A program made the position numbers and the translations under genes. From the sequence record OR805294.1: a DNA stretch of 64,000 nt; one strand, written 5' to 3'. Below, piece by piece: positions 21,957-42,507 of the stretch. Position 1 is the first letter of the stretch. Every line of letters starts with the position of its first letter. Below the pieces are notes generated by a model, which ran no database searches, was not told where the DNA came from, and saw only the letters and a program-made list of their open reading frames with translations.

Positions 21957-22529
21957 ATGAGCATACTTACTTCTATATTAAATAATACTTTAAATTCAGT
22001 AGTGTTTGTTTATGGTAGAATGAATCCCCCTACAATAGGGCACGGAAAAGTTATATCAGAAATGCTAAAGATAGCAAAAGAATATAATGCTGCGCATTGT
22101 GTGTTTTTGTCTCATTCTTCTGGAAATAAAAAAAATCCATTACTTTGGGAAGAAAAAGTATCATATATGAAAATGTTTTTTCCTGGGGTAAATATTAACG
22201 AATCTAAAATAAATAATCCGTTTTCTGCATTAGATTTACTTTCGAAAAAATATAAACACGTAACCTTTATTGCAGGAAGTGATAGATTAGAAGATTACAA
22301 AAGAAATATGCCTGCATATGCAAAAAGTATAGGCATAGAATTAGATATAATATCGTCTGGTAATAGACTAGAAGAGAGTACTTCTATAGAAGGTGTAAGT
22401 GCGTCTAAAGCAAGAAAATTAGTCTTAGAAAACAATTTTGAACTATTTTCTGAATTAATACCATCTGACGATATTGCAGAAAAAAGAAATTTATTTTTGC
22501 TGCTTCAAACTAGATTAATGGATAATTAA
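21957..22529 (+). CDS. HIGH-motif nucleotidyltransferase (cytidylyltransferase/NMNAT-like)
   Basis: VFVYGRMNPPTIGH (HIGH-like), KKNPL, FIAGSDR, and GVSASKAR (SxS/T-xxR motif). Confidence 0.85.
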   Translation: MSILTSILNNTLNSVVFVYGRMNPPTIGHGKVISEMLKIAKEYNAAHCVFLSHSSGNKKNPLLWEEKVSYMKMFFPGVNINESKINNPFSALDLLSKKYKHVTFIAGSDRLEDYKRNMPAYAKSIGIELDIISSGNRLEESTSIEGVSASKARKLVLENNFELFSELIPSDDIAEKRNLFLLLQTRLMDN

Positions 22530-22531
22530 AT

Positions 22532-23479
22532 ATGTTGAAAATAAAAGGAAGTCCATCCGTAGGTAAAATATCAGCAACAATTAATAGACCGTTTTTAACT
22601 AAAACCTTAGTTACTACGATGCCACAAAACATTGCAAATTTTACTGCAGGATATGGTGGCGGAATGTTGCATATATTCGGGGGCGAAGCTGTTCCTAGTG
22701 TAGGCCAAATACAAATATATAGACGATACAATATAGCAACTAATACTTGGTTAAGTCCTAGCGGAAACATAGGAGCCTGGGCATGGGGAGGCGGCGGCTA
22801 TTACAATGGAAGTTTTTGGGCGCTGTGTGGTTCTAACAATGGATATAATACTTCGTATTTTCAGATAAACCCTTCCACTGCAACAGGTACACGATATACA
22901 GATATGGCCGGCGGTTCTAGAGGACAAGGAAGAACCGCATCAGTAGATAATCTAAACGTATTTGTTATAGGAGGTATTGGGCAAAATAATATAACAAATG
23001 CATTGTGTTATAGATTTAATGCTAGTACAAGAGCATGGACAGTAAGAACAAGTATGCCATCGCCAAGAAATGGTCATACCATAGGATCGTATAACGGGAA
23101 AATATATGTACTAGGTGGCTGGAACGAAACATCAAACAATCTTTCAGACGTTCTAGAATACAACATATCTACTAATACGTGGACAACTTTACCTACTACA
23201 ATACCAGGAGCACCTTCTAGCTGGTTCGGCGGGTTTGTATATAAACAATATGCTGTATACGGCGCGTCATCTTCTTCTAATACGCTTTTATTTAAAATAT
23301 TAGATTTAAATAAAATGACATGGGAAATTTTAGATACCGGGTTGCCTCGCCGCTGGTCTGCAGAATATGTAGTTACAGAAACCGGTGTATATATGATAGG
23401 CGGTAGTAGTTCTTATCCCGGCGCTGCCAACTATTTTACTGCCCCCAGATATAACGAAATATATTTCTTTAAAGGTTAA
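22532..23479 (+). CDS. Kelch-repeat beta-propeller protein
   Basis: Repeated IFGG/VIGG/VLGG/MIGG...Y(N/D)xxTNTW units, e.g. NGKIYVLGGWN...VLEYNISTNTW. Confidence 0.88.
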   Translation: MLKIKGSPSVGKISATINRPFLTKTLVTTMPQNIANFTAGYGGGMLHIFGGEAVPSVGQIQIYRRYNIATNTWLSPSGNIGAWAWGGGGYYNGSFWALCGSNNGYNTSYFQINPSTATGTRYTDMAGGSRGQGRTASVDNLNVFVIGGIGQNNITNALCYRFNASTRAWTVRTSMPSPRNGHTIGSYNGKIYVLGGWNETSNNLSDVLEYNISTNTWTTLPTTIPGAPSSWFGGFVYKQYAVYGASSSSNTLLFKILDLNKMTWEILDTGLPRRWSAEYVVTETGVYMIGGSSSYPGAANYFTAPRYNEIYFFKG

Positions 23480-23481
23480 AC

Positions 23482-25760: not shown

Positions 25761-25785
25761 AAGCCGTGCTTTTGCGCGGCTTTTT
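25761..25785 (+). terminator. Rho-independent terminator
   Basis: AAGCCGTGC-tttt-GCGCGGCTTTTT. Confidence 0.65.
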
Positions 25786-25801
25786 ATTTTGTAGGACAAT
25801 T

Positions 25802-28213
25802 ATGTACATCGATATTTTCGAAGATAAGAAAAATGAAATACTTCTGGTTGCAGAACGATCTGCAGGCAAACGAATATACAAACAATACCCTATAGATCAT
25901 ACGTATTACATATTAGATGCAAACGGACCGTATAAGGATATATTCGGTAATAATGCTAAAGCCATTAAGCCATCTAGCATAAATGAAAAAATGACTCAAA
26001 TGAAAATGCTAGATTTTTCGCAAACGTGCGAAATAGACGTCAGGCCAGAATTTAGATGCCTGGAAGTAAACTATAAGAATGCACCTATGCCAGATTTGCA
26101 TGTTGCATTCTTCGATATCGAGACCGCGTTTGATCAAAAACGCGGTTATGCCGACCCAGCTGATCCTTTTAATCCCATTATATCAATATCTGTATATTTG
26201 CAATGGATGCAGCAAATGGTTTGCTTAGCATTAGCACCAGAGACTATATTGCCAGAAGATGCACAACGCATAGCATCAGAAGTAGGCGAAACAATTATAT
26301 GTAAAAATGAAAAAGAAATGCTAAGTATGTTTATTGACTTAGTAGAAGATGCAGACATTTTATCAGGTTGGAACTCAGAACGTTTCGATATTCCTTATAC
26401 TTTTAACAGAATTGTAAAATTATTAGGTAAGAATGAACTAAGAAAATTATGCCTTTGGAATCTTATGCCCAAGAAGCGCAATATTGAACAAGAAGGCGGC
26501 AGTAGTTTTGTTACATTCGAAACGTTTGGTAGAATACATTTAGATTATCTCCAATTGTATAAAAAATATAATTACGAAGAACGTCATAGTTACTCGTTAG
26601 ATTCTATTTCGGAAATCGAACTAGGTGAACGAAAAGTTCCATACAACGGAACATTAGACAAACTTTATAAATATGATTTTAAAAAGTTTTTAGAATATAA
26701 CATTCAAGATACTCGACTCCTAGATAAGTTAGATAGAAAATTAAAATATATAGATCTAGCTTCCACTATTGCACATAGTAATTGCATTCCTATCCCTACT
26801 GTTATGGGTGCAGTAGCTACAACCGAACAAGCAATTATAATCGAAGCACATAATAACGGCATGGTAGTGCCATCTAGGCAACGTTTTAAAAACAATGATA
26901 CCCTTAAAGCTGCAGGCGGCTGGGTAGCATATCCTAAAGTAGGACTGCATAGAGATATTGGCTCAAGTGACTTAAATTCTCTGTATCCTTCTGTGTTAAG
27001 GGCACTAAACATGAGCCCAGAAACTATTATAGGACAAGTTCGGTTAACACTTACTAACCCTGCAATTGAAGAATGGTGTGCAAAAGGCGGAACAAAACAT
27101 ACATTTGCTGCATGGTGGAACGATAGGTTTACCACTTTAGAAATGGAATATGTGTTAAACAAAGACAGGGGTACTATATTAACGTTAGATATGGCAGACG
27201 GGCGCTCGTTTGAACTGTCAGGTGCCGAAATATACGAATTAGTATTCAACAGTGGTCAGAATTGGCATATCAGTGCTAACGGAACTATATTCACACAAGA
27301 CAGAGCAGGTGTAATTCCGTTACTGCTTACAAGATGGTATGCAGAACGTAAAGGGATGCAGAAAATTGCATCAGATTATAATTCTTTAGATAAAGAACAC
27401 CATAGCGACAAAACTGTATTTTTAGAAGATAAATCAGTATTAGATGGAATATGCGTAGGCGAAGTTGAATTAGCAGACCATTATAATATTAATGATGTAT
27501 ATGTTGCAGCTACATTAAAAAATCTTGTCGAATCAAAAAATTGGCAAGAAGTAGCAATATATATGAAAAAGTATGGACTAGAAGTGTCGTCTGACAATTC
27601 AATTGTTATGTCAGATTCCCATATGCAAAACGAATATTACGAATATTGGGATAAAGCCCAGTTAGTTCGTAAAATTGGATTGAACAGCTTATATGGCGGA
27701 CTACTTAACGAACATTCCAGGTTCTACGATAAAAGACTAGGGCAGAGTACTACACTCACAGGGCGCTGTATCACTAGACATATGGCTTCTAAAACAAACG
27801 AAATGTTCACTGGCATTTATGATCACGAAGGCGATTGTGTAATTTATGGCGATACAGATAGTGTAGATGGATCAACTATCCTAAATACTTCTCTAGGTAA
27901 AATAACTATAGAAGAATTGTTTAATGTGTCTGACAAGCATGTAGTTCATGCAGAAAAAGAATTTGCTTCGAATGAAGATGTTATGGTAATGTCGTGGGAC
28001 AATTCTGCAAAACAACCATATATGGGGCATATAAACTATGTGTACCGCCACGAAGTAGAAAAAGAGTTATTCGAAATAGAAGACAACAACGGAAATAAAG
28101 TTATAGTAACCGAAGATCATTCTATTATGGTTATACGTAATGCAGAACTACTAGAAGTTAAACCCACAGATTTAACAGATAGTGATATAATATTATCTAT
28201 TGTATATGAATAA
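25802..28213 (+). CDS. polB: DNA polymerase family B, N-terminal part, fused to the N-fragment of a split intein
   Basis: ExoI FFDIET, ExoII GWNSERFDIPY, ExoIII YNIQD, motif A SSDLNSLYPS, motif B KIGLNSLYG, motif C YGDTD, then intein sequence. ATG 25802 is preferred. Confidence 0.95.
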   Translation: MYIDIFEDKKNEILLVAERSAGKRIYKQYPIDHTYYILDANGPYKDIFGNNAKAIKPSSINEKMTQMKMLDFSQTCEIDVRPEFRCLEVNYKNAPMPDLHVAFFDIETAFDQKRGYADPADPFNPIISISVYLQWMQQMVCLALAPETILPEDAQRIASEVGETIICKNEKEMLSMFIDLVEDADILSGWNSERFDIPYTFNRIVKLLGKNELRKLCLWNLMPKKRNIEQEGGSSFVTFETFGRIHLDYLQLYKKYNYEERHSYSLDSISEIELGERKVPYNGTLDKLYKYDFKKFLEYNIQDTRLLDKLDRKLKYIDLASTIAHSNCIPIPTVMGAVATTEQAIIIEAHNNGMVVPSRQRFKNNDTLKAAGGWVAYPKVGLHRDIGSSDLNSLYPSVLRALNMSPETIIGQVRLTLTNPAIEEWCAKGGTKHTFAAWWNDRFTTLEMEYVLNKDRGTILTLDMADGRSFELSGAEIYELVFNSGQNWHISANGTIFTQDRAGVIPLLLTRWYAERKGMQKIASDYNSLDKEHHSDKTVFLEDKSVLDGICVGEVELADHYNINDVYVAATLKNLVESKNWQEVAIYMKKYGLEVSSDNSIVMSDSHMQNEYYEYWDKAQLVRKIGLNSLYGGLLNEHSRFYDKRLGQSTTLTGRCITRHMASKTNEMFTGIYDHEGDCVIYGDTDSVDGSTILNTSLGKITIEELFNVSDKHVVHAEKEFASNEDVMVMSWDNSAKQPYMGHINYVYRHEVEKELFEIEDNNGNKVIVTEDHSIMVIRNAELLEVKPTDLTDSDIILSIVYE
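27860..28210 (+). mobile_element. Split intein N-fragment (IntN, 117 aa)
   Basis: Begins SVDGSTIL immediately after YGDTD (block A, Ser1). Block B VTEDHS (TxxH). Ends at stop codon 28211-28213. Confidence 0.92.
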
Positions 28214-29888
28214 AGATTATTATCAGTCATACGCAAAAGAATTAAAAAAGAATAATAAGAAAGAATACAATCGTATTCTTTCTTTGTATGAGCCTGTATT
28301 CGATAAATGGGTTGCATTCAAGTATTACATAGAAGGAATATCGCCGCCTGTATGTAAAGAATGTGGTAATAGAATAACTGTTTCGGCAAAACAAGCAGAA
28401 TATCACACAGAATGCAAATATAATAAACACAAGTATTCATTTGATAAATTTATAAAATGCATAGATGATGACCAATACATATATTGTGTGTGGAATGGAT
28501 ATATTTCAACATCTGACAATATAACATACAGATGCACTAAACACGGCATAATTGTTCAAAAACTTAGTTCTAGACTAAAAGGTCACAAATGCCAAAAATG
28601 TTCAGCTGAGCGTAAAGTAAGTCTAGATAACTTTAATAACTGGAAAACGCAGTGTTCTAAAATACATAATAATTTTTATGATTATTCTGTATCTACTGAT
28701 TTTACATTCTTAACAAAAGATGTATCTATTAAATGTCCAATACATGGAATATTTAAACAAAGAGCAAACGTTCATCAATCGGGTCACGGTTGTAAAAAAT
28801 GCTCGTTCGAAGCCATCGGTCATAGATTATCATATGACACAGATTCTTTTATAGAAAGAAGTAATAACGTTCATAATAATTTTTATGACTATACCAAAAC
28901 TATATACACTAACATTAGAGATAAAGTTATTATAACATGTCCGATACACGGCGACTTTAATCAGATAGCATATTATCATACTGCCGGACACGGTTGTCAG
29001 AAATGCGATTTAGATAAAGTAGCAGAAACTACCTATAGATCTAAGGCAGAAATAGAAATATTTGATTTAGTTAAATCTTATTGCTCAGATACAATTCATT
29101 CATACAATAAATTCGGGTTCGAATTAGACATATATGTTCCTAGTAAAAATCTTGCAATAGAATATAATGGACTTTATTGGCATTCTTCTAAACACATAGA
29201 AACTGATCAAAAGTATAAAACATACCATCTTGATAAAACCACTACATGCGAACAAAATAATATCCAATTATTACACATTTTCGACAACGAATGGCATACT
29301 AAAAAAGATATATGGATCTCGGTGATAAAAAATAAACTAGGTTTATCTAATAAAATATATGCAAGAAAAACAGAAATTAAAGAAGTTAATTTCGATGATG
29401 CAAAGCAATTCGCCGAAACGAATCATTTGCAGGGTCATGCACAATTTCGGTATGCATACGGACTGTATTATTTAGATCAATTAGTTTCTTTATTAACAAT
29501 TGCAAAACCCAGGTTTAATAAAAATGCAAACTGGGAAATAGTAAGATTTTGTAACCTAAATAACACAAGTGTAATAGGTGGGTTTTCTAAATTATTAAAG
29601 GTAGTTTCTTGTAATTTTACAGGCAAGATAGTATCATATGCAAATAGGCGCTGGTCCGCAGGAAACGTTTATGAAAAAAACGGATTTGCCAAAACTTCAA
29701 TAATAGCTCCTGGATTTTATTATACTGACTTCAAAGATACATATAATAGATTATCTTTCTCTAAAGACAAGGCAAAAGTTAAATTAAAAAATTATAATAA
29801 TTCAGTTAGCGTAGTAGAAAATATTTACGCAAACGGATATGGCAGGATTTGGGATTCAGGAAATATTGTTTATACAAAGGATTTATAA
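28206..29888 (+). CDS. Free-standing homing endonuclease (Zn-ribbon repeats, Vsr/EDxHD-like nuclease, C-terminal Mom/GNAT-like domain)
   Basis: Three C-x2-HG...H-x2-G-x2-CxxC repeats. ELDIYVPSKNLAIEYNGLYWHS nuclease motif. Overlaps the Pol-N stop (ATGAATAA). Confidence 0.85.
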   Translation: MNKDYYQSYAKELKKNNKKEYNRILSLYEPVFDKWVAFKYYIEGISPPVCKECGNRITVSAKQAEYHTECKYNKHKYSFDKFIKCIDDDQYIYCVWNGYISTSDNITYRCTKHGIIVQKLSSRLKGHKCQKCSAERKVSLDNFNNWKTQCSKIHNNFYDYSVSTDFTFLTKDVSIKCPIHGIFKQRANVHQSGHGCKKCSFEAIGHRLSYDTDSFIERSNNVHNNFYDYTKTIYTNIRDKVIITCPIHGDFNQIAYYHTAGHGCQKCDLDKVAETTYRSKAEIEIFDLVKSYCSDTIHSYNKFGFELDIYVPSKNLAIEYNGLYWHSSKHIETDQKYKTYHLDKTTTCEQNNIQLLHIFDNEWHTKKDIWISVIKNKLGLSNKIYARKTEIKEVNFDDAKQFAETNHLQGHAQFRYAYGLYYLDQLVSLLTIAKPRFNKNANWEIVRFCNLNNTSVIGGFSKLLKVVSCNFTGKIVSYANRRWSAGNVYEKNGFAKTSIIAPGFYYTDFKDTYNRLSFSKDKAKVKLKNYNNSVSVVENIYANGYGRIWDSGNIVYTKDL

Positions 29889-30143
29889 ATGCATAATCTA
29901 ACAAAACACCTTTTAGGTGTATTTTCTGCAAAAACAGAAGACGAAGAATATAACAGTGCAAAAAGAGCGTTAGAAGAATTAAACAAAAATATAAAAGAAA
30001 GAGATCCTAATAAATTTAATGTGTCTTTAGGAAAGGTATCTAAAGTAACTAATTTAGGAAAAAAGAAACAATATGTATACGATATAGGGATGAAAAATCC
30101 CGATAATCCGTATTTCTTCGGAAATAATATATTAGTTCACAAT
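29889..30143 (+). mobile_element. Split intein C-fragment (IntC, up to 85 aa)
   Basis: Block F VYDI and block G ILVHN, followed by Ser+1 at 30144. Confidence 0.92.
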
Positions 30144-31028
30144 TCTTGCTATTTTACTGCATGGCCTGCAGTAAAAGACCTTGTAGAATCCGGCGAAATG
30201 GAATGGGATAAAGATACTGTCATTAAATTATACGACAACGTTTCGTCGCAAGTAAGTGATACATTTCCAGAATTTTTAAAACAAACATTTAATGTTCCAT
30301 ATAAAAACTCAGAAGGTGTTATTAAGTCAGGTAGGGAAATTGTAGCTACTTCCGGTCTTTTTATTAAAAAGAAACGTTATGCTGCTATGATGTATGATAA
30401 AGAAGGTACTAGATACGACGACGAAAACAGCCCAGGAAAAGTAAAAGCAATGGGTTTAGACTTACGTCGGTCAGATACGCCTAAATTTGTCCAAACATTC
30501 CTCATGGAAATTCTAGTTATGGTGCTAACACATAAAACAGAAGATGAAGTAATAGAATATATTAGAGAATTTAAAAAAGAATTTAATAAAATGAAACCGT
30601 GGGAAAAGGGAATGCCAAAAGGCGTCAACGGTATCAGTACATATGAAGATAAATTAGAAGAACACATGAATAAAAAGTTAGCAGGAAGAGAGTCTAGAAT
30701 CACTGTCCCTGGTCACGTGTCTGCTGCGATGAATTGGAATAAACTAAAGCTTATCAATAAAGACCTACATACTCCTAAAATCTCAGATGGTCAAAAATGT
30801 GTTGTTTGTTATTTAAAAGAAACCGCAGACAATCATTTTACTAGTATAGCATATCCTGTAGATGAATTGCACTTACCAGAATGGTTTACGTCTTTGCCAT
30901 TTGATGAAGATTTAATGAGAGAAAAAGTAGTAGATAACAAAGTTAAGAACCTTTTGGGTATTCTAAAATGGGATTTTAGTAAAACAGAAGAAGCTGCTGC
31001 ACACTTTGATTCGCTGTTTGGTTGGTAA
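29889..31028 (+). CDS. polB: Split intein C-fragment fused to DNA polymerase B C-terminal part
   Basis: YVYDIGM...FFGNNILVHN|SCYF, followed by Pol thumb motifs IKKKRYA, KAMGLDLRRSDTP and VPGHV. Confidence 0.95.
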   Translation: MHNLTKHLLGVFSAKTEDEEYNSAKRALEELNKNIKERDPNKFNVSLGKVSKVTNLGKKKQYVYDIGMKNPDNPYFFGNNILVHNSCYFTAWPAVKDLVESGEMEWDKDTVIKLYDNVSSQVSDTFPEFLKQTFNVPYKNSEGVIKSGREIVATSGLFIKKKRYAAMMYDKEGTRYDDENSPGKVKAMGLDLRRSDTPKFVQTFLMEILVMVLTHKTEDEVIEYIREFKKEFNKMKPWEKGMPKGVNGISTYEDKLEEHMNKKLAGRESRITVPGHVSAAMNWNKLKLINKDLHTPKISDGQKCVVCYLKETADNHFTSIAYPVDELHLPEWFTSLPFDEDLMREKVVDNKVKNLLGILKWDFSKTEEAAAHFDSLFGW

Positions 31029-31108: not shown

Positions 31109-31855
31109 ATGATTGTAGACAATTTAAAGGACGTAGTTCGTAACACTCACGGTTTAGGTTTTATAGATACTGTTAAAATTATCGGTTCTGTAAATGAAAC
31201 TAAATTAGAAGCTATGTCAACTAATAAAACTGTAGTTATGTACGGTTCTTTAAAAAAATCCATTCCGGGGTTAGACGATACTGTAGGTTTAAGTAGAATG
31301 TCTGTACTGAGCGGTATGTTAAATTTCCCACCATATTCGGGAGATGATGCTGAAGTTTCTATTAAGAAACAAGAACGTAACGGTGAAGAAATTCCTGCAG
31401 AAATTGTATTTTCTTCTTCGACGGGTCATAAATCGTCGTACCGGTTTATGGCACGAGATACAGTAGACGAAGTGCTAAAAGTTCCGCCGTTTAGAGGAGT
31501 TGTGTGGGATATAGTTATTCAACCTACTAAACAAGCGATGAAGGATCTTCAATATTTTAGTGCTGTATTGGGTTCTTATGAATCTAACTTTTTAGTTAAA
31601 GTAACAGACGGTGTTTTAGAATTCCACATAGGTACCGGTGCTACTAGTGACCGTACTGTTGTACCATTTGCAAAAGATGTAAAGAGCACATTACGCAATA
31701 ACTGGTCCTGGCCATTACCAGAAGTGTTAGCAATTCTAAAAAACGCAGATAGTGGCAAATGTACTATGTCTATTTCTAGCCAGGGTGCATTAATGATTGA
31801 ACTCGATACTGGGTTAATAGAAGTTCAATATATTCTTCCTGCAAAAAGTGCATAA
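31109..31855 (+). CDS. Putative DNA sliding clamp / processivity factor
   Basis: 248 aa, clamp-sized, directly after polB. Alpha/beta pattern, and the C-terminal ALMIELDTGLIEVQYILPA resembles PCNA/gp45 ends. Confidence 0.6.
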   Translation: MIVDNLKDVVRNTHGLGFIDTVKIIGSVNETKLEAMSTNKTVVMYGSLKKSIPGLDDTVGLSRMSVLSGMLNFPPYSGDDAEVSIKKQERNGEEIPAEIVFSSSTGHKSSYRFMARDTVDEVLKVPPFRGVVWDIVIQPTKQAMKDLQYFSAVLGSYESNFLVKVTDGVLEFHIGTGATSDRTVVPFAKDVKSTLRNNWSWPLPEVLAILKNADSGKCTMSISSQGALMIELDTGLIEVQYILPAKSA

Positions 31856-31858
31856 ATA

Positions 31859-32119
31859 ATGATCTTACCTGCTCGTAAATTAGTTAAATTGCAATACTAT
31901 ATTGTACAGGAATCTTACAATTCTATAGGTAGACCAATAACTACAGTTACTCTTGTATACAGAAAATATATATTTTTTACAAAGAAAGAAAAAATTATAT
32001 TCGAGCGTATTAAGAAAACAGACAATTTGTATTATAAACAAGAATCTGAAAAAGAGTTGTGTGAACAACTAAGTGTATGGGCAAAAAGAACATTAAAAAT
32101 ATATGATATAGGGCAATAA
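31859..32119 (+). CDS. Hypothetical protein
   Basis: 86-aa ORF ending in a terminator. Confidence 0.55.
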   Translation: MILPARKLVKLQYYIVQESYNSIGRPITTVTLVYRKYIFFTKKEKIIFERIKKTDNLYYKQESEKELCEQLSVWAKRTLKIYDIGQ

Positions 32120-32134
32120 TTGCCCTATATTTTT
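32106..32134 (+). terminator. Rho-independent terminator
   Basis: ATATAGGGCAA-taa-TTGCCCTATATTTTT. Confidence 0.75.
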
Positions 32135-32191: not shown

Positions 32192-33814
32192 ATGAAAAAT
32201 TTATCAAACAGTCAAAAAGATTATGCGATCTATTTGCCTGCAATTAGTGGGTTTTACACAAAACAATTAGACAGTTCTATTAACGATCCGTCTACAAGAA
32301 AAATACCTAGCTTTCCTAATGGATATAATACTCTTAATTTTTTAGATCCATCTAGCGATACTTTCTTTTACGGGTATGGGTTATATTCTGCAGGCCATGC
32401 AGAACTGTCTTTATCTAGAACTGATGCAAAAGAATGGATGATCCAAGCCAGGGACAAAACACAAACAACAGTTATTGCAGATTCGGGTGGTTTCCAGGTA
32501 GCTACTGGTGTAATTAAATTAAACTGGGATGATTTTAAAGGAGCTAGCGGAGATAAAATAAGAAATGAAATTTTAAAATGGTGTGAACATACCGCCGACT
32601 GGTCGATGACACTAGATGTTCCTGCGTTTGCTGCTACTCCTCCGTACAGTTCAAAAACCGGTCTTAATAAATTTGAAGATACATTAGATTATTCTCTTCA
32701 TAATTTACATTATTACATGAAGAACAGAACTCCCGGCGCAACTAAATTCCTTAGTGTATTATCAGGATCAGATGTAGATACATCTAAAATTTGGTACGAC
32801 AACGTAAAAGCATTTAGTGACCCAGCTAAAGTAGTAGAAATGGGATATCCAGCTAGTCATACACTTGAAGGGTATGCATTTGCTGGTATAAACATGAGAA
32901 ATATGTATTGTGCTCTTTCTCGATTCTTAGATCTAATAGATGATAATATTATTTCAGATAAAAACTGGATACACTTTCTTGGATTAGGCAGGACTGATTG
33001 GGCTTGTTTCTTAACATCTATTCAGCGAAATATAAGAAAACATTATAATCCTAATATTAACATAAGTTTTGACGCGGCTTCTCCGTTTGTTTCTGTGGCA
33101 TACGGTCTTGCATATAACTATAATTATTTTAATCCCAAACGGTGGGGATATAATATGGATTCTGCCCCAGACAGCAGAGAGTTTAGTGATAAGGATATTC
33201 CTATGCCGTTTATGAGTCCTATTATGGAAAAATTATCATTAAAAGACATATGTCCATATCACAATGGTTATGGTATAATAAATGGCGTTAAAAATGCAAA
33301 CTTTACAAAAGAAGATGTAGAAACTGCTCTTAAAGAAGGAAAAGATGCAGAATACGTGCCGCCTAGCGCAAATAAAAATGGTAAAGTAGGTAAAACCAGT
33401 TGGGATTCACTTAGTTACTTATTAATAATGAATCACAATGTTTACAACCATATAGCTGCAATCCAAGAATCTAATAGATTAGTCGATATAGAACGGTTGC
33501 GAGTTAAAGTAGATTACCGAGATTGGACTAGAGATAAAAAGAAAGGTACTATAGAAGTAAGTAATCACGTCCCTAGTTCGATTTTATATTTTGACCATTT
33601 CGTAGAAGTATTGCTAGATCCGAGTACTCCTAATAAGCGACAATTACTAGAAGATTATAGACCTATGCTAGACAGCATTAGTTTCGGTAATTATAACTCA
33701 AACTCATTTAATAGTCTTTTTGATGTAGATGCTACTGCAATTGAAGATGAAAATAAGTTTGCAGACATAAACGACGAAAAACTAACTGAATTAGAACAAG
33801 GATTAGACAATTAA
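32192..33814 (+). CDS. TGT-fold transglycosylase, DpdA-like (7-deazaguanine DNA insertion candidate)
   Basis: ADSGGFQ (TGT signature), MTLDVP, IHFLGLG, ISFDAASP (catalytic-Asp region) and NHN. The CxCxxC Zn site is not evident. Confidence 0.78.
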   Translation: MKNLSNSQKDYAIYLPAISGFYTKQLDSSINDPSTRKIPSFPNGYNTLNFLDPSSDTFFYGYGLYSAGHAELSLSRTDAKEWMIQARDKTQTTVIADSGGFQVATGVIKLNWDDFKGASGDKIRNEILKWCEHTADWSMTLDVPAFAATPPYSSKTGLNKFEDTLDYSLHNLHYYMKNRTPGATKFLSVLSGSDVDTSKIWYDNVKAFSDPAKVVEMGYPASHTLEGYAFAGINMRNMYCALSRFLDLIDDNIISDKNWIHFLGLGRTDWACFLTSIQRNIRKHYNPNINISFDAASPFVSVAYGLAYNYNYFNPKRWGYNMDSAPDSREFSDKDIPMPFMSPIMEKLSLKDICPYHNGYGIINGVKNANFTKEDVETALKEGKDAEYVPPSANKNGKVGKTSWDSLSYLLIMNHNVYNHIAAIQESNRLVDIERLRVKVDYRDWTRDKKKGTIEVSNHVPSSILYFDHFVEVLLDPSTPNKRQLLEDYRPMLDSISFGNYNSNSFNSLFDVDATAIEDENKFADINDEKLTELEQGLDN

Positions 33815-34875
33815 TGAAAGTTATAATAATCCCAATCGAATCAATAGAAACTCGGTATACGTCAGAATGGAATACGTTTCTTAAACCGCAACTAGAAAAG
33901 TATATAAACGAATCCGGTCTCGATGCAGAAATAGTTCAAATCGATGTAGATTATGTTGACGAAGGCACCTCTGCGGGCGCCTTCCTTAACTTTGCAAATA
34001 CAAACATATTCAAAAGCAATCAATTCATTAAGTTAGCAAGTATAATAGAAACTTTAAACGATAACGATGTTGTTCTCTATACAGACGCATGGAATCCCAC
34101 AGTAGTTCAACTAAATTACATGCGATCGTTAATGAATAAAAAATTTAAAATAATGGGGTTGTGGCACGCCGGTTCGTATGATCCGCATGATTTTTTAGGA
34201 AGGCACTTTGATAAAAATTGGTCATATGAATTTGAAAGATCATTATATAATATATATGATGTAAATTTCTATGCAACTAATTTTAGTAAAGATCTCATGA
34301 TAGATAACCTTTTTGGTAAAACAGCTAACGTAAACAGACACGATATAGTAGGTTGGCCAATGGAATATTTAGTTGACCAACTTACGCCTTCTCCTAACAA
34401 GACAGATACTATATTATTTCCTCATCGAATTTCTCCTGAAAAACAACCAAATATATTCAAAAAATTAAGATCATTACTTCCTAACTACGAGTTTGTTTTT
34501 GCACAAGAAACTAAATTATCAAAGGCAGAATATCATACACTTCTTAAACGTTCTAAAATTGTCTTTTCGGCTTCGTTGCAGGAAACATTGGGTATAGGTT
34601 TCTACGAAGGTGCATTAGTCGGTGCAATTCCGTTATTGCCTGACCGATTGTCTTATAAAGAAATGACAGAAAATGTAAAAAACAGAAATTTATATGTATA
34701 TCCAAATGAATGGACTATTTCAGAAAATCTGGCAGACCTAAAAAATTTAGTTACCCTAATAGATTATACTATGCGTAATTATAATTTTATAGTAGAAGAA
34801 ATGAAACTTAATTTACTGCCCGAATTAAACAAATATTATAACGGAACAGAGTTGTATAAAAGAATTTTAAAATAA
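33814..34875 (+). CDS. GT-B glycosyltransferase (GT4-like)
   Basis: ILFPHRISPEKQP...SKIVFSASLQETLGIGFYEGALVGAIPLLPD (Ex7E-type motif). TAATG-coupled to the TGT-like gene. Confidence 0.85.
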   Translation: MKVIIIPIESIETRYTSEWNTFLKPQLEKYINESGLDAEIVQIDVDYVDEGTSAGAFLNFANTNIFKSNQFIKLASIIETLNDNDVVLYTDAWNPTVVQLNYMRSLMNKKFKIMGLWHAGSYDPHDFLGRHFDKNWSYEFERSLYNIYDVNFYATNFSKDLMIDNLFGKTANVNRHDIVGWPMEYLVDQLTPSPNKTDTILFPHRISPEKQPNIFKKLRSLLPNYEFVFAQETKLSKAEYHTLLKRSKIVFSASLQETLGIGFYEGALVGAIPLLPDRLSYKEMTENVKNRNLYVYPNEWTISENLADLKNLVTLIDYTMRNYNFIVEEMKLNLLPELNKYYNGTELYKRILK

Positions 34876-34959
34876 TTTCCATTTAATATTCTGCATGCAA
34901 TTTACATTTTAATACGAAAACATTATAATATTACAAAATTAAAAATAAGGATTATTTTT

Positions 34960-35337
34960 ATGGGAATTAAACGATGGATCGAAGTTCCTTTTCAAAAAGA
35001 AGGAATTCACATGTACCCGGGTGCAGATAATAACCCTGCACTAGCTACAAATGATTGGAAAGATGTATCTTTTTTAGGATATCCTCATTTTCATTATTTT
35101 TATTTTACTGTTAAAATTGAAGTTTTTCATAATGAACGAGATATCGAATTTATTCAATTTAGACGGTTCTTAGAAAGACTATATAGTGAATCTCTGCTAA
35201 AACTAGATGGTAAATCTTGTGAAACAATGGCAGAAGAATTATATGAACAAATTAACATTGTATATCCTAACAGGGACGTTGTGATTACAGTGGCAGAAGA
35301 CAATATTAATAAAGCTGTTTTAGAATTTTTCAAATAA
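34960..35337 (+). CDS. queD: QueD-like T-fold 6-carboxytetrahydropterin synthase
   Basis: EGIH...GYPHFHYFYFTVKIEV...IEF...KSCETMAEEL...ITVAED: metal-binding His triad and T-fold pattern. Confidence 0.68.
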   Translation: MGIKRWIEVPFQKEGIHMYPGADNNPALATNDWKDVSFLGYPHFHYFYFTVKIEVFHNERDIEFIQFRRFLERLYSESLLKLDGKSCETMAEELYEQINIVYPNRDVVITVAEDNINKAVLEFFK

Positions 35338-35351
35338 GCAAGGATGCTATT

Positions 35352-35612
35352 ATGTATAATAAACAACTGTCAGGAATATATACTACTACAACGATAAACT
35401 CTATGCCAGCTAGCTACTCCGGATTAACGGATCTAGGCATGTATGATACAGAACTTTCGGTATTGAGGAAAAAGATAGAACAGATAGAAAAAATGTTGTG
35501 CATGTTAGAAGTAGATAAATTACTTTCAGAAAAATATCCTGCATTAAAATCTGCATATGACGAATACGAAGTCATATTATCTATCATAAACGGTACGGAG
35601 AAAAAAGAGTAA
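35352..35612 (+). CDS. Hypothetical coiled-coil protein
   Basis: 86-aa ORF with a KYPALKSAYDEY motif. Confidence 0.6.
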   Translation: MYNKQLSGIYTTTTINSMPASYSGLTDLGMYDTELSVLRKKIEQIEKMLCMLEVDKLLSEKYPALKSAYDEYEVILSIINGTEKKE

Positions 35613-36131
35613 ATGGCAATGCGTGTCATTATTACTGGTTGTAACGGTTATGTTGGTAAAACAGTAAGCAAATACTACTATACATTAGGATATAATGTAG
35701 TGGGATTTGATTTAATTAATTCAAAAAATAGTTACATAACTAATTTTTATCAAACTAGCTATGCATCTAGTATCGCAGAAGATATAATACTCGAGTCTGA
35801 TGCAGACACGCTTATTCATTGTGCTGTAGAAAAAAGCAATACATTACAACAACATTTCTACCACAATAGTATTCAATTTATAAACTTATTATCAGTATTA
35901 AAAAATACTTCTATAAAAGAAATAATAGTATTTAGAAATAAAAGTGCAGAAAATAATGATGCCCTTTTAAAACTCTCTAATAACACTAATAAAGACTATT
36001 TAGAAGAATTTTCTAAATCGACAGGAATTAATTCAAAAATATATAATTTGTTAGATAAGAATAATGAACAACACATTATAGAATTAGTACAACCGTATTT
36101 AGAATTAAGTAAACACTTTTATATATTTTAA
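35613..36131 (+). CDS. Truncated NAD-dependent epimerase/dehydratase-like protein
   Basis: RVIITGCNGYVG (GxxGxxG), VVGFD and LIHCA motifs. Only 172 aa, and no clear YxxxK. Confidence 0.65.
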   Translation: MAMRVIITGCNGYVGKTVSKYYYTLGYNVVGFDLINSKNSYITNFYQTSYASSIAEDIILESDADTLIHCAVEKSNTLQQHFYHNSIQFINLLSVLKNTSIKEIIVFRNKSAENNDALLKLSNNTNKDYLEEFSKSTGINSKIYNLLDKNNEQHIIELVQPYLELSKHFYIF

Positions 36132-36142
36132 GGAGATATTAT

Positions 36143-36577
36143 ATGTACGATAAAAATTTTGTATCAATGGATCAAATGCCAGTTATTGTCAGTGACTTGG
36201 TTAGTGATATAGACGAAGCAGGAATTTCTCCTAAAGTTATTATTGCTATTAGCAAAGGTGGACTAATTCCTGCCACTATGATTAGCTATTATTATGATTG
36301 CCCTATTGTAACATACGATCCGGTAGAAGATTGTTTTAGTACAAATAATGATATAAGTTCTGAATGCATTATCGTAGATGATGTTATCGATACAGGCAAT
36401 ACTGTAAATTCTGTTATTTCTTTGTTAGAAGACGAATTCTTTTTTACAAAAGAAGACATTAGTAAAATTAGAGTAGCATCAATATTTGCAACAAGAAATA
36501 ATACAATTGTAGATTTTTATCATGACGAAATAAGTTACCATGATTCGGTAAGTTTTGAATTTAAACAATTTATTTAA
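36143..36577 (+). CDS. Type I phosphoribosyltransferase
   Basis: IIAISKGGLIPA and the PRPP-binding loop IIVDDVIDTGNT. Confidence 0.85.
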   Translation: MYDKNFVSMDQMPVIVSDLVSDIDEAGISPKVIIAISKGGLIPATMISYYYDCPIVTYDPVEDCFSTNNDISSECIIVDDVIDTGNTVNSVISLLEDEFFFTKEDISKIRVASIFATRNNTIVDFYHDEISYHDSVSFEFKQFI

Positions 36578-36647
36578 TATAAAGTTATTCTTTACTTTTA
36601 GTATGATTGCGTTTATAATGTATATTATAAAATAAAGCGGATTATGT

Positions 36648-37520
36648 ATGAAACACAGATATACTGAAAAGTTTTTCTCAGTCCAGGGAGAAAGCCTACA
36701 TACCGGAAAACTATGCACTTGGCTTAGATTTTTCGGATGTTCGTTGCAATGTAGGGGCTTTGGACAAAAAGAACCTGGAAATCCCGAAACATGGGTAGAA
36801 CAACGACCGGATTTAATAGATGTAACAAACATTACAGATTATAAACAATTACCGACTCCTAAGTATGGATGTGATTCAGACTATTCTGTATTTGCTAAAT
36901 TTAAACATCTTGCAACAGAAGTCGATCCTGTTGTAGTTGCAAATGAAATAAAACAATTAATTCCTAGTAAAACATTTGGTAAAAAAATAGGTCATGTATT
37001 TACGGGCGGAGAACCGTTAGTAAACCAAGAATCTATAGTAGATATAGTAAATTATTGGATAGATACTAATGATTATCCTGCATGGATAGGAATAGAAACA
37101 AATACAACTAGACCGTTAGAAAAATGCTTAATCGATTTAGTTAACAGATGTAAATCGATTGGTGTGCAATTTTATTTTTCTATGTCACCCAAACTACTTC
37201 ATGTAGCAGGTGAACAACCCAAACGAGCTATCCATATAAATTTAATGAAGGAATATATAGATATTGCACCGGATAGCTATCTAAAATTTGTAGTAAATGA
37301 AGATCAGCGATCGTGGGATCAAGCAAAAAGTATAGTAGACACATTAAATGCTGACGGGTATTTACCAGATGTGTGGGTTATGCCAGTCGGAGGCATTTAT
37401 TCCCAACAAACAGACCCAGTAATTGGAAGACTTGCAGATAAAGCTATCTTCGAATACGAATGGAATGTTAGTTTACGTGTTCACGTATTAACCTGGGGTG
37501 ACGATCAACTAGGTAGGTAA
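36648..37520 (+). CDS. queE: 7-carboxy-7-deazaguanine synthase (radical SAM)
   Basis: EKFFSVQGES...LRFFGCSLQC...CDSDYS (Cx3C...C cluster motif with insertion), VFTGGEPL, IETN, SMSPKL, LKFVV, WVMPVG, SLRVHV. Confidence 0.92.
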   Translation: MKHRYTEKFFSVQGESLHTGKLCTWLRFFGCSLQCRGFGQKEPGNPETWVEQRPDLIDVTNITDYKQLPTPKYGCDSDYSVFAKFKHLATEVDPVVVANEIKQLIPSKTFGKKIGHVFTGGEPLVNQESIVDIVNYWIDTNDYPAWIGIETNTTRPLEKCLIDLVNRCKSIGVQFYFSMSPKLLHVAGEQPKRAIHINLMKEYIDIAPDSYLKFVVNEDQRSWDQAKSIVDTLNADGYLPDVWVMPVGGIYSQQTDPVIGRLADKAIFEYEWNVSLRVHVLTWGDDQLGR

Positions 37521-37524
37521 AACC

Positions 37525-37944
37525 ATGAACCGTATTATCCTTTCTGTAGTGTTTAGTTTAATATCGTCGTATGCAGTATGCGGAGAAAATAAATCCTATA
37601 TAAATCCGCATCTTCATGGAAAATGCGTCGGGATGGTTACTAAACTGTCTGAATATGCAAATACCGAAGTATTAACTTTAAAATTGTATAATATAGGTCA
37701 GGTACTTCATGCATACGGCAAATACACTGCACTAAAATCGAATAATGCAGATACAGCACTGTATGATCAAGGATTAGTTGACGGAAGAGAAACAGTTTCT
37801 AAAAATATAGAAAATAACAATTTTAATGTTTTAGTAAAATATTATGAAGATAATTGTCTAGAAATATTTTACAAATCTGCAGACTGGTTATATCATAATA
37901 ACATACACCAGTTCAATAAATTAACGGATATTTTTAATAAATGA
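37525..37944 (+). CDS. Hypothetical exported protein
   Basis: N-terminal signal-like MNRIILSVVFSLISSYAVC. Confidence 0.6.
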   Translation: MNRIILSVVFSLISSYAVCGENKSYINPHLHGKCVGMVTKLSEYANTEVLTLKLYNIGQVLHAYGKYTALKSNNADTALYDQGLVDGRETVSKNIENNNFNVLVKYYEDNCLEIFYKSADWLYHNNIHQFNKLTDIFNK

Positions 37945-38552
37945 AAAAAAGATTATTTCCATTTTGGTTATGGCCATATAGCTGGGGATTACCTGCTAAA
38001 CAGAAAGCTATTGCAAAAGCAGAGTATTATCTCGAAGGAGAAGAATTAGATAGGGAATTAGTAGCACTATCGAATGCAACAAGCAAAGCCAAAGAAATTG
38101 AATTATTACATATTGATTTTAAATATGGTAAAATAACAGAATACGAATACGATGTTGCTTTAGCTAACACTCAATACGATCTGGGCCTAGCTTTAGACTT
38201 AAAATTAGCTGATATAGATTTAAAGCATCATAAAATAAATGAAAGGGAACATAGCAAACGAATTGCTACCTTAAGAAAGCTACCTTGGGTAGATATAATA
38301 AAGATAGGCTTGTCTTCCTCTGATATTTCGACAGGAGAAATGGAATTAGACTGGAATGAATATTTTATAGAAGAATTGCACGAATACGGATATGTAGGTA
38401 GGACTGATGAAGAAGTAGTAAATTTATGGTTATCTACTTTATGTAAAAATATCGCATTAGACGAATTCGGTGGAATGGGATCTGTAGACGATCTTTCAGA
38501 AGATAATGACAAAATAGATAGCAAAGAAAACTATAAAAGGGAATTTAAGTAA
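37941..38552 (+). CDS. Conserved jumbo-phage hypothetical protein
   Basis: 203 aa containing ELDWNEYFIEELHEYGY; coupled to the exonuclease gene. Confidence 0.7.
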   Translation: MKKRLFPFWLWPYSWGLPAKQKAIAKAEYYLEGEELDRELVALSNATSKAKEIELLHIDFKYGKITEYEYDVALANTQYDLGLALDLKLADIDLKHHKINEREHSKRIATLRKLPWVDIIKIGLSSSDISTGEMELDWNEYFIEELHEYGYVGRTDEEVVNLWLSTLCKNIALDEFGGMGSVDDLSEDNDKIDSKENYKREFK

Positions 38553-40851: not shown

Positions 40852-41052
40852 ATGACGTTAGTAGTATTGTACATAATAATCCAATCTATTTTAGTAGGTA
40901 TACTGCATCATTTAGCTATAAGAAATCTTGTATTAAAAGAAAATTGGTTATGTGTATTTATACTATCGACTATATTATGGATATTATGGCCTATAGGTTA
41001 TCTAATATCATGTATATACGCAATGTATATTAAATATAAAAACCCTGTATAG
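40852..41052 (+). CDS. Small membrane protein
   Basis: Two hydrophobic segments. Confidence 0.55.
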   Translation: MTLVVLYIIIQSILVGILHHLAIRNLVLKENWLCVFILSTILWILWPIGYLISCIYAMYIKYKNPV

Positions 41053-41068
41053 TCTATACAGGGTTTTT
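41038..41068. terminator. Bidirectional terminator
   Basis: AAAAACCCTGTATAG-t-CTATACAGGGTTTTT. Confidence 0.8.
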
Positions 41069-41128
41069 ATATACCCAGTAAATTATAAAATCAGATAAAT
41101 AATACGATGGCTATTACTGGAGATATAT

Positions 41129-41422
41129 ATGGCACGTCCAAAACCTACTATCCTTGTTGAACATGTAGATCCAAAAACATATAAATCTGAGCAAATACTC
41201 GAAGCTGAAGCTGTGTTTGCTGTATTTTATAAAGGCGAGCCTATCAATATACGGTCACAGAGTGCATTGATAGATTATGCTCCTAAATATAAGAAATCTA
41301 CATTTGTTAACCCGGGCCATGCACTTAATTTGGCTGAACGTTTAAATGAAATGTTTAAATGCACTGACTTTACTGTTCATAAATTAATTGCAGGAGAAAA
41401 ATACACCGGTGAAGAATACTAA
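41129..41422 (+). CDS. Conserved jumbo-phage hypothetical protein
   Basis: MARPKPTILVEH...; GATAAATA box at 41094 and a GGAG RBS. Confidence 0.75.
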   Translation: MARPKPTILVEHVDPKTYKSEQILEAEAVFAVFYKGEPINIRSQSALIDYAPKYKKSTFVNPGHALNLAERLNEMFKCTDFTVHKLIAGEKYTGEEY

Positions 41423-41759
41423 GCTTAGAGATTCAATTTTCTCTTATTTAAGAGAAAATAACGAATCTTTAACTGAGTTAACAGATATAGAACTTAATCG
41501 TTTTATATTTGCACACCCTTCTAGTTTTAGACTGTCGTATGATGGTCTAAAACTATTTTCAAAACTATTCACTTCTTATACCTACCATATAGATTTTAAA
41601 ATAACTTTCAGACAAAGATTGCTATTAGGTAGGCATCTAAAATTTCCTTATTATTTTAGTGATAAAAGATTAATATTGTTTTCATACGACGATTCTTTAT
41701 ATTTAAATTTAATAGGCGATATAAAACTCTGGTTAGAATCGTTCGAACATAGTGTTTGA
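41388..41759 (+). CDS. Hypothetical protein
   Basis: ORF; GTG at 41409 is an alternative start. Confidence 0.65.
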   Translation: MQEKNTPVKNTKLRDSIFSYLRENNESLTELTDIELNRFIFAHPSSFRLSYDGLKLFSKLFTSYTYHIDFKITFRQRLLLGRHLKFPYYFSDKRLILFSYDDSLYLNLIGDIKLWLESFEHSV

Positions 41760-41784
41760 CATATTTTAAATACTTTTATAAAAT
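41756..41784 (+). promoter_or_regulatory. sigma70 promoter
   Basis: TTGACA-17 bp-TAAAAT. Confidence 0.7.
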
Positions 41785-41813
41785 TACAGTATATAAAGTG
41801 CTGTAAAATTGTC

Positions 41814-42188
41814 ATGAAAAAATCTAAATCTATCACTAGAGCCGAAAACAAAAAACATCAACAATATATAACTAATATGAAATTAGGTGGCAATCCTAAT
41901 AAGTACGGTAAATCTAATACTTATAAAAAACCTAATATAGAACTAAGTCCTAGTATACCTGCATGGGCTACTACACTATCAGAATACAAAAGCATAGAAA
42001 CAAATAAACCTATAAACAATGCTATTCCAGTCAAATATGAAGACGAATTTGCAATAAGAGAAGAAATTGCATTAAAAGAAAAAGAACGTAAAAAACAATT
42101 TGTTGCAGTAGCTTACAACAAGGGCGGATATGTATATTTAGGTGAAAATCCACCCGATGAAATTGTTAAATCAATTGGCAAAAAGTAA
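41814..42188 (+). CDS. Hypothetical basic protein
   Basis: Contains VAVAYNKGGYVY. Confidence 0.65.
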   Translation: MKKSKSITRAENKKHQQYITNMKLGGNPNKYGKSNTYKKPNIELSPSIPAWATTLSEYKSIETNKPINNAIPVKYEDEFAIREEIALKEKERKKQFVAVAYNKGGYVYLGENPPDEIVKSIGKK

Positions 42189-42198
42189 AGGAACATTT

Positions 42199-42507
42199 AT
42201 GTTCTGCACACTACTAAACTTCTTTAAAAAAGATGTAAAGGTATATGCTGTAGTGGTACTTGCTCCTGGCTTAATTTGTTATCTAAGCAAGTTAAATAAT
42301 TTCGATTTAAAGATGGCAACAAGAATTTCTGGTTCAAAATATAAATTAGACGAAAAATTAATCGAAATAATTACTAAAGAAGATGCCATATTAAAAATGA
42401 TATCGGGAGAAATTACTAAAGATGGTAAAAACTATGTTCGCTTTGTAGAAATACCAGATCGTCTTAGACAAGTATTAAAATACCATTACATCGCAAATGT
42501 GATTTAA
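42199..42507 (+). CDS. Hypothetical protein
   Basis: ATG 42199 after AAGGA is preferred over the track start. Confidence 0.55.
   Translation: MFCTLLNFFKKDVKVYAVVVLAPGLICYLSKLNNFDLKMATRISGSKYKLDEKLIEIITKEDAILKMISGEITKDGKNYVRFVEIPDRLRQVLKYHYIANVI

Follow-up and report, generated by a model that had tools for sequence, protein, structure and literature searches.

Modification of phage DNA with 7-deazaguanine derivatives is a recognised anti-restriction strategy, and a 5.3-kb gene block of a jumbo phage raises the question of whether such a base may, in addition, carry a sugar. The block lies in Pseudomonas phage Ettore (OR805294.1), a PA5oct-like jumbo phage of the genus Wroclawvirus, and was analysed within a window of 64,000 nucleotides, by which we mean the whole stretch of DNA under study (position x of the window corresponds to position x + 62000 of the record, so that the window starts at record position 62001). 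The 5.3-kb region matches the Ettore record at 100% and is 98.6-99.6% identical to ten further records of PA5oct-like jumbo phages (Wroclawvirus). A first-pass annotation had read it as a cluster in which a DpdA-like transglycosylase, here called TGT540, is translationally coupled to a glycosyltransferase (GT) and inserts a 7-deazaguanine that is then glycosylated. Having examined folds, motifs, gene content and kept neighbourhoods, from which we infer the enzymatic steps, the sugar, its point of attachment and the order of steps, we retain the transglycosylase fold, the pathway and the link to the GT, while the argument from gene overlap, the type of base and the labels given to a QueD and an epimerase gene had to be revised. 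On balance, it appears probable that the phage uses this module to replace G in its own DNA with a 7-deazaguanine derivative as a defence against restriction, and that an integral GT4-like enzyme glycosylates this base.

The DNA of PA5oct resists several restriction enzymes, from which a modified G was deduced in a 2025 preprint that also noted QueE and PTPS genes and reported that END nucleases sensing modified G restrict this phage; the preprint identifies neither the base nor a transglycosylase nor a GT (PMC12191111). The PA5oct genome paper mentions no deazaguanine module, DNA modification or GT. In addition, literature searches returned no glycosylated deazaguanine in phage DNA, the sugar-bearing phage bases in the searchable papers being pyrimidines. 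While this kind of system is known, the new branch of DpdA, the integrated GT4/GalE genes and their wide distribution appear to be new in the searchable material.

TGT540 carries the motifs DSGGFQ (residues 97-102), MTLD (139-142), HFLG (261-264) and SFDAASP (292-298), which had originally suggested a TGT fold. In 32 homologues (47-80% identity), residues D97, S98, G100, Q102, D142, H261, G264, G266, S292, D294, A295, A296, S297 and P298 are invariant, and the motifs are therefore more than chance resemblances. Neither the single sequence nor the 32-member profile matched any entry in Pfam, PHROG, NCBIfam or the PDB sequences, and the identity of the protein was resolved by structure comparison only. 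When an AlphaFold 2 model (pLDDT 87.8) was compared with the PDB using Foldseek, ranks 1-8 were all occupied by TGT or QTRT structures (Zymomonas TGT; mouse and human QTRT1/2; probability 1.0, E 1.6e-4 to 4e-3), as the motifs had implied, with generic TIM barrels ranking after them. In BFVD, the model matched viral proteins that carry a TGT or queuine tRNA-ribosyltransferase annotation (viruses of Achromobacter, Mycobacterium, Microbacterium and Sulfolobales), together with, weakly, a 259-residue protein of Cellulophaga phage phiST (E 5e-3). The seventh BFVD match is a 464-residue protein of Vibrio phage nt-1 (E 2.4e-8), which may be the nt-1 DpdA2 (PMC6884629).

TGT and DpdA enzymes share three invariant aspartates, which serve as general acid/base (with an aromatic residue at +4), in base recognition and as nucleophile (PMC10164549). 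D97 (with F101 at +4), D142 and D294 of TGT540, all invariant across the 32 homologues, correspond to these three residues at the level of motifs. Furthermore, alignment of the TGT540 profile using hhalign with gp123, the protein in the DpdA position of Acidovorax phage ACP17 (probability 84%, E 8e-6), brought the DSGGxQ, HxLGxG and S-x-D elements into register, D97, D142 and D294 falling opposite DSGGLQ, SFD and SYDS in gp123. Based on the predicted structure, we conclude that TGT540 is a TGT/DpdA-fold enzyme, representing a new and unnamed branch of DpdA-like transglycosylases outside the named subfamilies by sequence; its initial description as DpdA-like thus holds for the fold, but could not be extended to a named subfamily when DpdA1 and DpdA3 were compared by hhalign. 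Its predicted activity would be the exchange of G in DNA for a 7-deazaguanine derivative. The family is large, with more than 1,600 matches in a collection clustered at 90% and 1,017 representatives of 50% clusters retrieved by the profile at E <=1e-3 (289 at <=1e-30), and many of its members are found on contigs of 200-400 kb.

Among solved structures, those nearest to TGT540 are tRNA enzymes, and Ettore has a phage tRNA cluster that includes tRNA-Asn, so that TGT540 might be thought to modify tRNA, of the host or of the phage set, instead of DNA. We consider this very improbable, since the restriction behaviour of PA5oct shows its DNA to be resistant and sensed as G-modified (PMC12191111), TGT540 is present in a single copy and is the sole TGT-like gene found in an HMM (hidden Markov model) scan of the Ettore genome, its gene is syntenic with those for the DNA polymerase and the sliding clamp, and its viral structural neighbours are phage DpdA-type proteins. 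A distant homologue of 596 residues (30% identity) from Vibrio phage 2.275.O (L127:7905-17290) also follows the clamp gene. There, it clusters with an amidoligase-like gene, QueF, a YhhQ-type transporter, QueC, an amidotransferase (Gat), FolE and QueE, and the TGT540 family is in this phage wired to a preQ0/preQ1-type pathway without DpdL (see below) or GT.

The model of the GT (AlphaFold 2, pLDDT 90.4) has the two Rossmann domains of a GT-B fold and gave 114 PDB matches at E <=1e-3 in Foldseek. These were headed by BshA, MshA, PglA, PimA and glycogen synthase (E down to 8.7e-11), and several of the closest GT4 retaining transferases act on small acceptors. An EX7E motif is formed by the invariant E257 and E265, with seven residues between them, and H204, R205 and K210, likewise invariant, form a motif of the diphosphate-binding type; the two together are typical of GT4. 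The match to Pfam Glycos_transf_1 (19.9 bits, 5.6e-4) lies below the curated cutoff of 26.4, and some homologues have a precomputed PF00534 match. Neither the alpha- nor the beta-glucosyltransferase of T4 was among the top 50 PDB matches, and the UDP-glucose:tetrahydrobiopterin glucosyltransferase 5zer appeared at rank 48 (E 7.5e-7). This last match, together with the ability of T-fold proteins to bind pterins, would fit a scheme in which the joint product of FolE, PTPS-like T-fold proteins, a short-chain dehydrogenase/reductase (SDR) and the GT4 enzyme is a glycosylated pterin, comparable to cyanobacterial biopterin glucoside, and not a DNA base. Such a scheme is scarcely credible, since generic GT4 enzymes rank far above 5zer, QueE and a TGT-fold enzyme are always part of the module, and QueD usually does not adjoin it (1/38 loci). 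The identification of the SDR as a sepiapterin reductase was rejected together with the idea of a pterin glycoside, as the gene found in relatives is GalE (E 4e-57).

What links the GT to the transglycosylase? The TAATG overlap at 33812-33816, which had been taken as a sign of translational coupling, is present, the TAA stop codon (33812-33814) of TGT540 and the ATG of the GT gene sharing one base. It is nevertheless weak evidence for a joint function, because similar overlaps are common nearby (1 nt at 38552, 4 nt at 37941-37944), as is ordinary in a compact genome, and because this one is lineage-specific, relatives having other genes between the two open reading frames (ORFs). A better test was offered by gene neighbourhoods. 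At least 586 stretches in IMG/VR encode the GT, of which the best 80 were scanned with HMMs. TGT540 and DpdL were both found in 64/64 GT loci with at least 4.5 kb of upstream sequence, as was the sliding clamp in 62 of these; where at least 7.5 kb of downstream sequence was available (n=38), FolE was present in 37 loci and QueE in 35, with QueD adjoining in a single case. Overall, DpdL accompanied the GT in 78 of the 80 loci, including all those with enough flank. The clamp-TGT540 order, kept in nearly all relatives, links the transglycosylase gene to the block of replication genes.

The GT was also found in clusters with a different organization. In ACP17 the order is QueD, FolE, gp122, the DpdA-type gp123, GT, DpdL and QueE; in Xanthomonas X1 and BUDD it is FolE, a PP-loop protein, GT, DpdA, DpdL and QueE; in Burkholderia BCSR5, QueD and DpdL are followed by the GT, then a 446-residue protein, QueE and FolE; and in Sinorhizobium Phosso the order is clamp, DpdL, GT, FolE and QueE, with a TGT540 homologue elsewhere in the genome. 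The DpdA type of the ACP17, X1 and BCSR5 clusters differs from TGT540; overall, the GT has stayed beside DpdL or DpdA under two DpdA types and at least four gene orders. We extended this analysis to DpdL loci in species-representative genomes and metagenome-assembled genomes (MAGs), which fell into two classes. In the first (8 loci), clamp, TGT540, DpdL, GT and variable GalE and PRT genes are followed by FolE and QueE, and the GT is present in 8/8; in the second (13 loci), a phiST-type DpdA3 lies beside DpdL, and the GT is present in 0/13. The GT therefore goes with transglycosylases of the TGT540 and ACP17 types, not with DpdA3, and always accompanies DpdL, which also occurs without it. Taken together, the 64/64 viral loci and the several independent lineages provide strong neighbourhood evidence that the GT is an integral part of the 7-deazaguanine module, placing this claim of the first-pass annotation on firmer ground than the overlap had done. 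The presence of the GT within the deazaguanine block of many unrelated phages suggests a sugar-bearing DNA base that has not been described.

Three further observations were made in these loci. In X1 (L010:6332-6865), a 177-residue PAPS-reductase-like PP-loop protein (Pfam 1e-13) lies between the FolE and the GT/DpdA genes and may be QueC-like or carry out another ATP-dependent tailoring step. A marine contig (L008) has two 2-oxoglutarate-Fe(II) oxygenase genes (6989-7594, 10822-11454) and a HIT-family gene inside the module, none of which are present in Ettore, raising the possibility that an oxygenase could, in the marine clade, create a hydroxyl handle for glycosylation. Finally, DpdL lies beside a phiST-type DpdA3, QueD, QueE and FolE in cellular Actinomycetota genomes or MAGs (L112, L116, L118-L123), including those of Paractinoplanes ferrugineus, Streptomyces, Actinosynnema and Pseudonocardiaceae; these could be chromosomal modification systems of the 2'-deoxy-7-deazaguanosine (dDG) type, or prophages.

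The gene downstream of the GT had been labelled QueD-like. While its product is a paralogue of QueD, it is specifically a homologue of DpdL, with 33% identity to CGPG_00067 of phiST (BLASTP, E 6e-16). DpdL is a proposed decarboxylase of 7-carboxy-7-deazaguanine (CDG) that leads to dDG, and its signature LxxxHRHxF replaces the CxxxHGH of QueD (PMC10516641). In the Ettore protein this motif reads L39-x3-H43-F-H45-x-F47 (LxxxHFHxF), in which L39, H43, H45 and F47 are invariant in the alignment and position 44 is F where the signature has R. The gene content of Ettore matches the genomic pattern of DpdL, comprising FolE, QueD, QueE and a DpdA-type gene, with no QueC found; the HMM scan of the genome returned one copy each of DpdL and the GT. 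As first noted, folE and queC are both missing from the window. A search of the rest of the genome, which the annotation had proposed, placed folE and a pair of queD genes beyond the window, ~54 kb upstream (record 39.7-43.2 kb), but revealed no queC: none is present in the Ettore annotation or was found by tblastn with phage QueC (best E = 1.0), no per-ORF QueC HMM scan having been run. Likewise, neither QueF nor archaeosine genes are annotated anywhere in the Ettore genome. With DpdL present and QueC not found, one would expect a base derived from CDG or 7-deazaguanine (DG), and not one of the preQ0, preQ1 or G+ type considered at the outset. Between the two QueD copies (record 40949-42368, L011) lie genes for a ClpX-like AAA+ protein (Pfam AAA_2 1.5e-24, ClpX zinc finger) and a homologue of ribosomal protein S21.

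The phosphoribosyltransferase (PRTase) and QueE-like genes follow as originally described. QueE genes were found by tblastn in 135 phage records; the Ettore protein scores 1e-10 to 5e-3 against the NCBIfam QueE equivalogs, far below their cutoffs, has an atypical spacing of its cluster cysteines and gave no PDB sequence match.

In phiST, dDG is associated with the genes for FolE, QueD, QueE and DpdL in the absence of QueC, and dDG with full replacement has been reported for Vibrio phage VP1. It could thus be argued that the DNA base of Ettore is plain dDG, DG having no obvious glycosyl acceptor and GalE being decayed in Ettore, and that the GT is a mere neighbour with a different substrate, for instance a protein, a small metabolite or some other base of the DNA. 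This we regard as unlikely, though it deserves to be taken seriously. The GT persists beside DpdL or DpdA in at least four arrangements of the genes and with either of two DpdA types, and was never found without DpdL in the loci examined; DpdA3 clusters of the dDG type never carry it. Furthermore, the Ettore annotation contains one thymidylate synthase, DHFR and dCMP deaminase, and no hydroxymethyl-pyrimidine route is evident in it.

The PRTase suggests another alternative. It matches the PDB purine PRTase GpT-2 (2.9e-6) and, below the cutoff, NCBIfam XPRT (2.3e-9), and has homologues in related clusters. In tubercidin clusters, a PRTase (TubE) acts on CDG (10.64898/2026.04.15.718813), a precedent for a nucleotide-level route in which the PRTase, which adjoins QueE in Ettore and related clusters, would make a CDG or DG ribonucleotide, kinases and ribonucleotide reductase would convert it to a dNTP, and the polymerase would incorporate it, leaving TGT540 a secondary or different role. 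Ettore does encode a ribonucleotide reductase, a dNMP kinase and a MazG-like pyrophosphatase. Even so, this route is improbable: a DpdA-type transglycosylase is present in 64/64 loci, beside the clamp; known 7-deazaguanine DNA modifications have all been argued to be post-replicative, as DpdA is always present (Cui et al., PMC10516641); and the PRTase, which is not found in the ACP17, X1 and phiST clusters, is neither universal nor better explained in this way than by guanine salvage.

The gene first called NAD-epimerase-like has the expected Rossmann/Epimerase match (Pfam Epimerase 6e-7), but this covers residues 5-106 only and the 172-residue product is a truncated remnant of GalE, 26% identical to the N-terminal ~150 residues of its counterpart in a relative (L003). 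In relatives, the GalE gene is full length (312-324 residues), and the L003 product aligns along its entire length with GalE structures of the PDB (E 4e-57). The GT comes in two subtypes. Ettore, Phosso and the marine clade have the A-type, as does ACP17 (39% identity, E 4e-62), and the B-type, with 392-408 residues and 22% identity to the Ettore GT, accompanies a full-length GalE among the nearest relatives of TGT540. Ettore has an A-type GT alongside the GalE remnant, which looks like the replacement of one GT by another and subsequent decay of an epimerase that was no longer needed.

Table 1 Features of the Ettore module and its surroundings (window positions, except for the last row, which gives loci of relatives).
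Feature	Position	Strand	Evidence or remark
Sliding clamp	31109..31855	+	Neighbour; clamp followed by TGT540 kept in nearly all relatives (62/64 loci)
Terminator-like hairpin	32105..32131	+	Perfect 12-bp stem followed by T-run, readable on both strands; between clamp/orf86a and TGT540 genes
TGT540, candidate divergent DpdA-like guanine transglycosylase, 540 aa	32192..33814	+	Fold, invariant Asp, single genome copy
GT-B fold, GT4-like (retaining-type) glycosyltransferase, 353 aa	33814..34875	+	Fold, EX7E motif, kept neighbourhood
DpdL homologue, QueD-paralogous T-fold protein, 125 aa	34960..35337	+	BLASTP to phiST CGPG_00067
orf86b, 86 aa, function not assigned	35352..35612	+	Homologues directly 5' of GalE gene in relatives (L004, L005)
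GalE (UDP-glucose 4-epimerase) remnant, 172 aa	35613..36131	+	N-terminal Rossmann half only
6-oxopurine-type phosphoribosyltransferase, 144 aa	36143..36577	+	Pfam Pribosyltran 3e-11
QueE-like radical SAM enzyme (7-carboxy-7-deazaguanine synthase)	36648..37520	+	PHROG 2076, 6.6e-49
139-aa ORF, lineage-specific, module membership uncertain	37525..37944	+	No homologue in 80 related loci
B-type GT loci of relatives	L003:9851-11077, L004:13026-14204, L005:11965-13143, L102, L104		With full-length GalE

All genes of the module lie on the plus strand, downstream of a family-B DNA polymerase and the sliding clamp and upstream of a 5'-3' exonuclease (Table 1). The hairpin 5' of TGT540 is probably where a new transcription unit begins; a promoter scan returned sites no more numerous than in shuffled sequence. 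The polymerase gene (25766-31028) consists of two ORFs, split by a homing-endonuclease ORF (28200-29888), and is uninterrupted in metagenomic relatives (981-983 residues). At the 3' end, a MazG/HisE-like pyrophosphatase function for the 139-residue ORF was considered and dropped, the match reaching an E of 0.07-0.09 only and the ORF lacking homologues in the 80 related loci. Beyond it, a 203-residue ORF (37941-38552) matches a PHROG 'virion structural protein' (8.7e-39) and occupies the same place 3' of QueE in 43/80 related loci and in Phosso, an odd position for a structural-type gene inside a replication and modification block. Further upstream (21957-25392), a weakly cytidylyltransferase-like ORF is followed by genes for a Kelch-repeat protein (3e-20) and a Laminin_G_3 protein (2e-14) beside a tail-fibre gene; this region is unrelated to the module, and the cytidylyltransferase-like gene (21957-22529) was dropped as a candidate sugar-activation partner in view of its weak match and its Kelch and Laminin-G tail-fibre-type neighbours.

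How might the module work? FolE and QueD, encoded upstream, would together with QueE convert GTP to CDG, which without QueC would have no onward route to preQ0; the DpdL homologue may then convert CDG to DG, as proposed for phiST. TGT540 would swap DNA guanine for the modified base through a double displacement with an Asp nucleophile, as in TGT and DpdA, and the PRTase could recycle the excised guanine or, alternatively, make a deazaguanine nucleotide. The GT would transfer a hexose from a UDP-sugar to the deazaguanine, acting either before insertion, on the free base (HuiG, which modifies N2 of a deazapurine in huimycin biosynthesis, is an example), or after it, on the base within DNA (as the T4 glucosyltransferases do). 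Expression of ACP17 dpdA and dpdL gave no dDG in E. coli, and other enzymes were suggested to be needed (Cui et al., PMC10516641); the GT gene, which sits between ACP17 dpdA and dpdL, is absent from that account. Should the GT act first, this null result and the need for distinct DpdA types would both be explained. We tentatively raise a more specific possibility, less probable than the reading as a whole: that the GT4 enzyme sugars the free DpdL product, that new DpdA branches with enlarged pockets insert this pre-glycosylated base, and that GT subtypes, with or without GalE, are swapped to vary the sugar. Its carriers would be the PA5oct-like phages, a sizeable group of big phages that is mostly marine, and the ACP17, X1 and BCSR5 lineages.

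A number of points weigh against the proposal of a glycosylated 7-deazaguanine inserted by TGT540. None of the 32 TGT540 family members (0/32) matches Pfam TGT (PF01702) or DUF6610, even at E up to 5, and Foldseek TM-scores against TGT are moderate (~0.5 on target). The structural zinc site of TGT and bacterial DpdA (CXCX2C...H) is not present in TGT540, which has no CXCXXC and no invariant Cys; in the alignment only C272 and C354 reach at least 90% conservation. Comparisons by hhalign with phiST DpdA3 (probability 23%), X1 DpdA and mycobacteriophage Rinkes DpdA1 were not significant, for which reason TGT540 was not filed under those subfamilies, and the TGT540 and DpdA3 HMMs gave no cross-matches. 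With respect to the base, a modified nucleoside in PA5oct-like phages is deduced from restriction behaviour and not from chemistry, and the decarboxylase role of DpdL is itself unproven, heterologous tests having failed (PMC10516641). If DpdL does decarboxylate, its product, 7-deazaguanine, offers no obvious hydroxyl, and the attachment point would be unusual (N2, O6 or similar). In Ettore, moreover, GalE is cut down to its N-terminal half. Finally, the 80 IMG/VR loci probably represent one viral clade, and their co-occurrence partly reflects shared descent; independent support for the GT link comes from the rearranged clusters, because these carry a different type of DpdA.

Comparison with known systems helps to place the module. 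Like the phage DpdA1-DpdA4 systems (PMC6884629; PMC10516641), it combines a GTP-derived pathway (FolE, QueD, QueE and, variably, QueC) with a TGT-fold inserter and an anti-restriction role among replication genes, but the Ettore enzyme has 540 residues, escapes detection by Pfam TGT, is neither a DpdA1 nor a DpdA3 by sequence and lacks conserved zinc-site cysteines; furthermore, Ettore-type clusters integrate a GT4 enzyme (with GalE in relatives) that those two papers do not mention. The dDG cluster of phiST (QueD, QueE, FolE, MazG, DpdL, DpdA3) shares DpdL, the lack of QueC, a position adjoining polymerase genes and the expectation of a CDG-derived base, but uses the 259-residue DpdA3 and has no GT. 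ACP17 shares the A-type GT between the DpdA-position gene and DpdL, together with FolE, QueD and QueE; its DpdA, however, is of another type (424 residues), it has no PRTase or GalE remnant, and its DNA chemistry is unreported in the cited papers.

Sugar transfer to non-canonical bases is known elsewhere. HuiG, a Glyco_transf_4-type enzyme (Pfam class PF13439) encoded beside FolE, QueD and QueE homologues, uses a UDP-sugar to place GlcNAc on the 2-amino group of a free 7-deazaguanine-type base (PMC7439116; 10.64898/2026.04.15.718813), though its gene cluster, which serves secondary metabolism in an actinomycete, includes QueC and a methyltransferase but lacks a transglycosylase. The T4 alpha- and beta-glucosyltransferases, which act on 5-hydroxymethylcytosine, are also GT-B enzymes encoded among phage DNA-metabolism genes, with the presumed use of a UDP-sugar on a non-canonical base as counter-defence in common; they are, however, not the nearest structural neighbours of the Ettore GT, whose action on DNA is only presumed and whose base would be a purine analogue without a hydroxymethyl handle. 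In animal tRNA, galactosyl- and mannosyl-queuosine are 7-deazaguanines bearing a hexose added by dedicated glycosyltransferases, the acceptor being the cyclopentenediol of queuosine, whereas Ettore has no queuosine-making genes.

If correct, our interpretation would describe a new class of DNA hypermodification and a new branch of transglycosylases, comprising ~1,000 clusters at 50% identity. As Pfam does not detect this branch, it goes unrecognised in present screens for "DpdA-positive" phages; TGT540 or an ACP17-type DpdA, together with DpdL and an A-type or B-type GT, would provide a marker set for its annotation. It would also explain why ACP17 dpdA and dpdL alone yielded no product. For the PA5oct-like phages, which are under study for therapeutic use, it would identify the chemistry responsible for both their resistance to restriction and their sensitivity to END nucleases.

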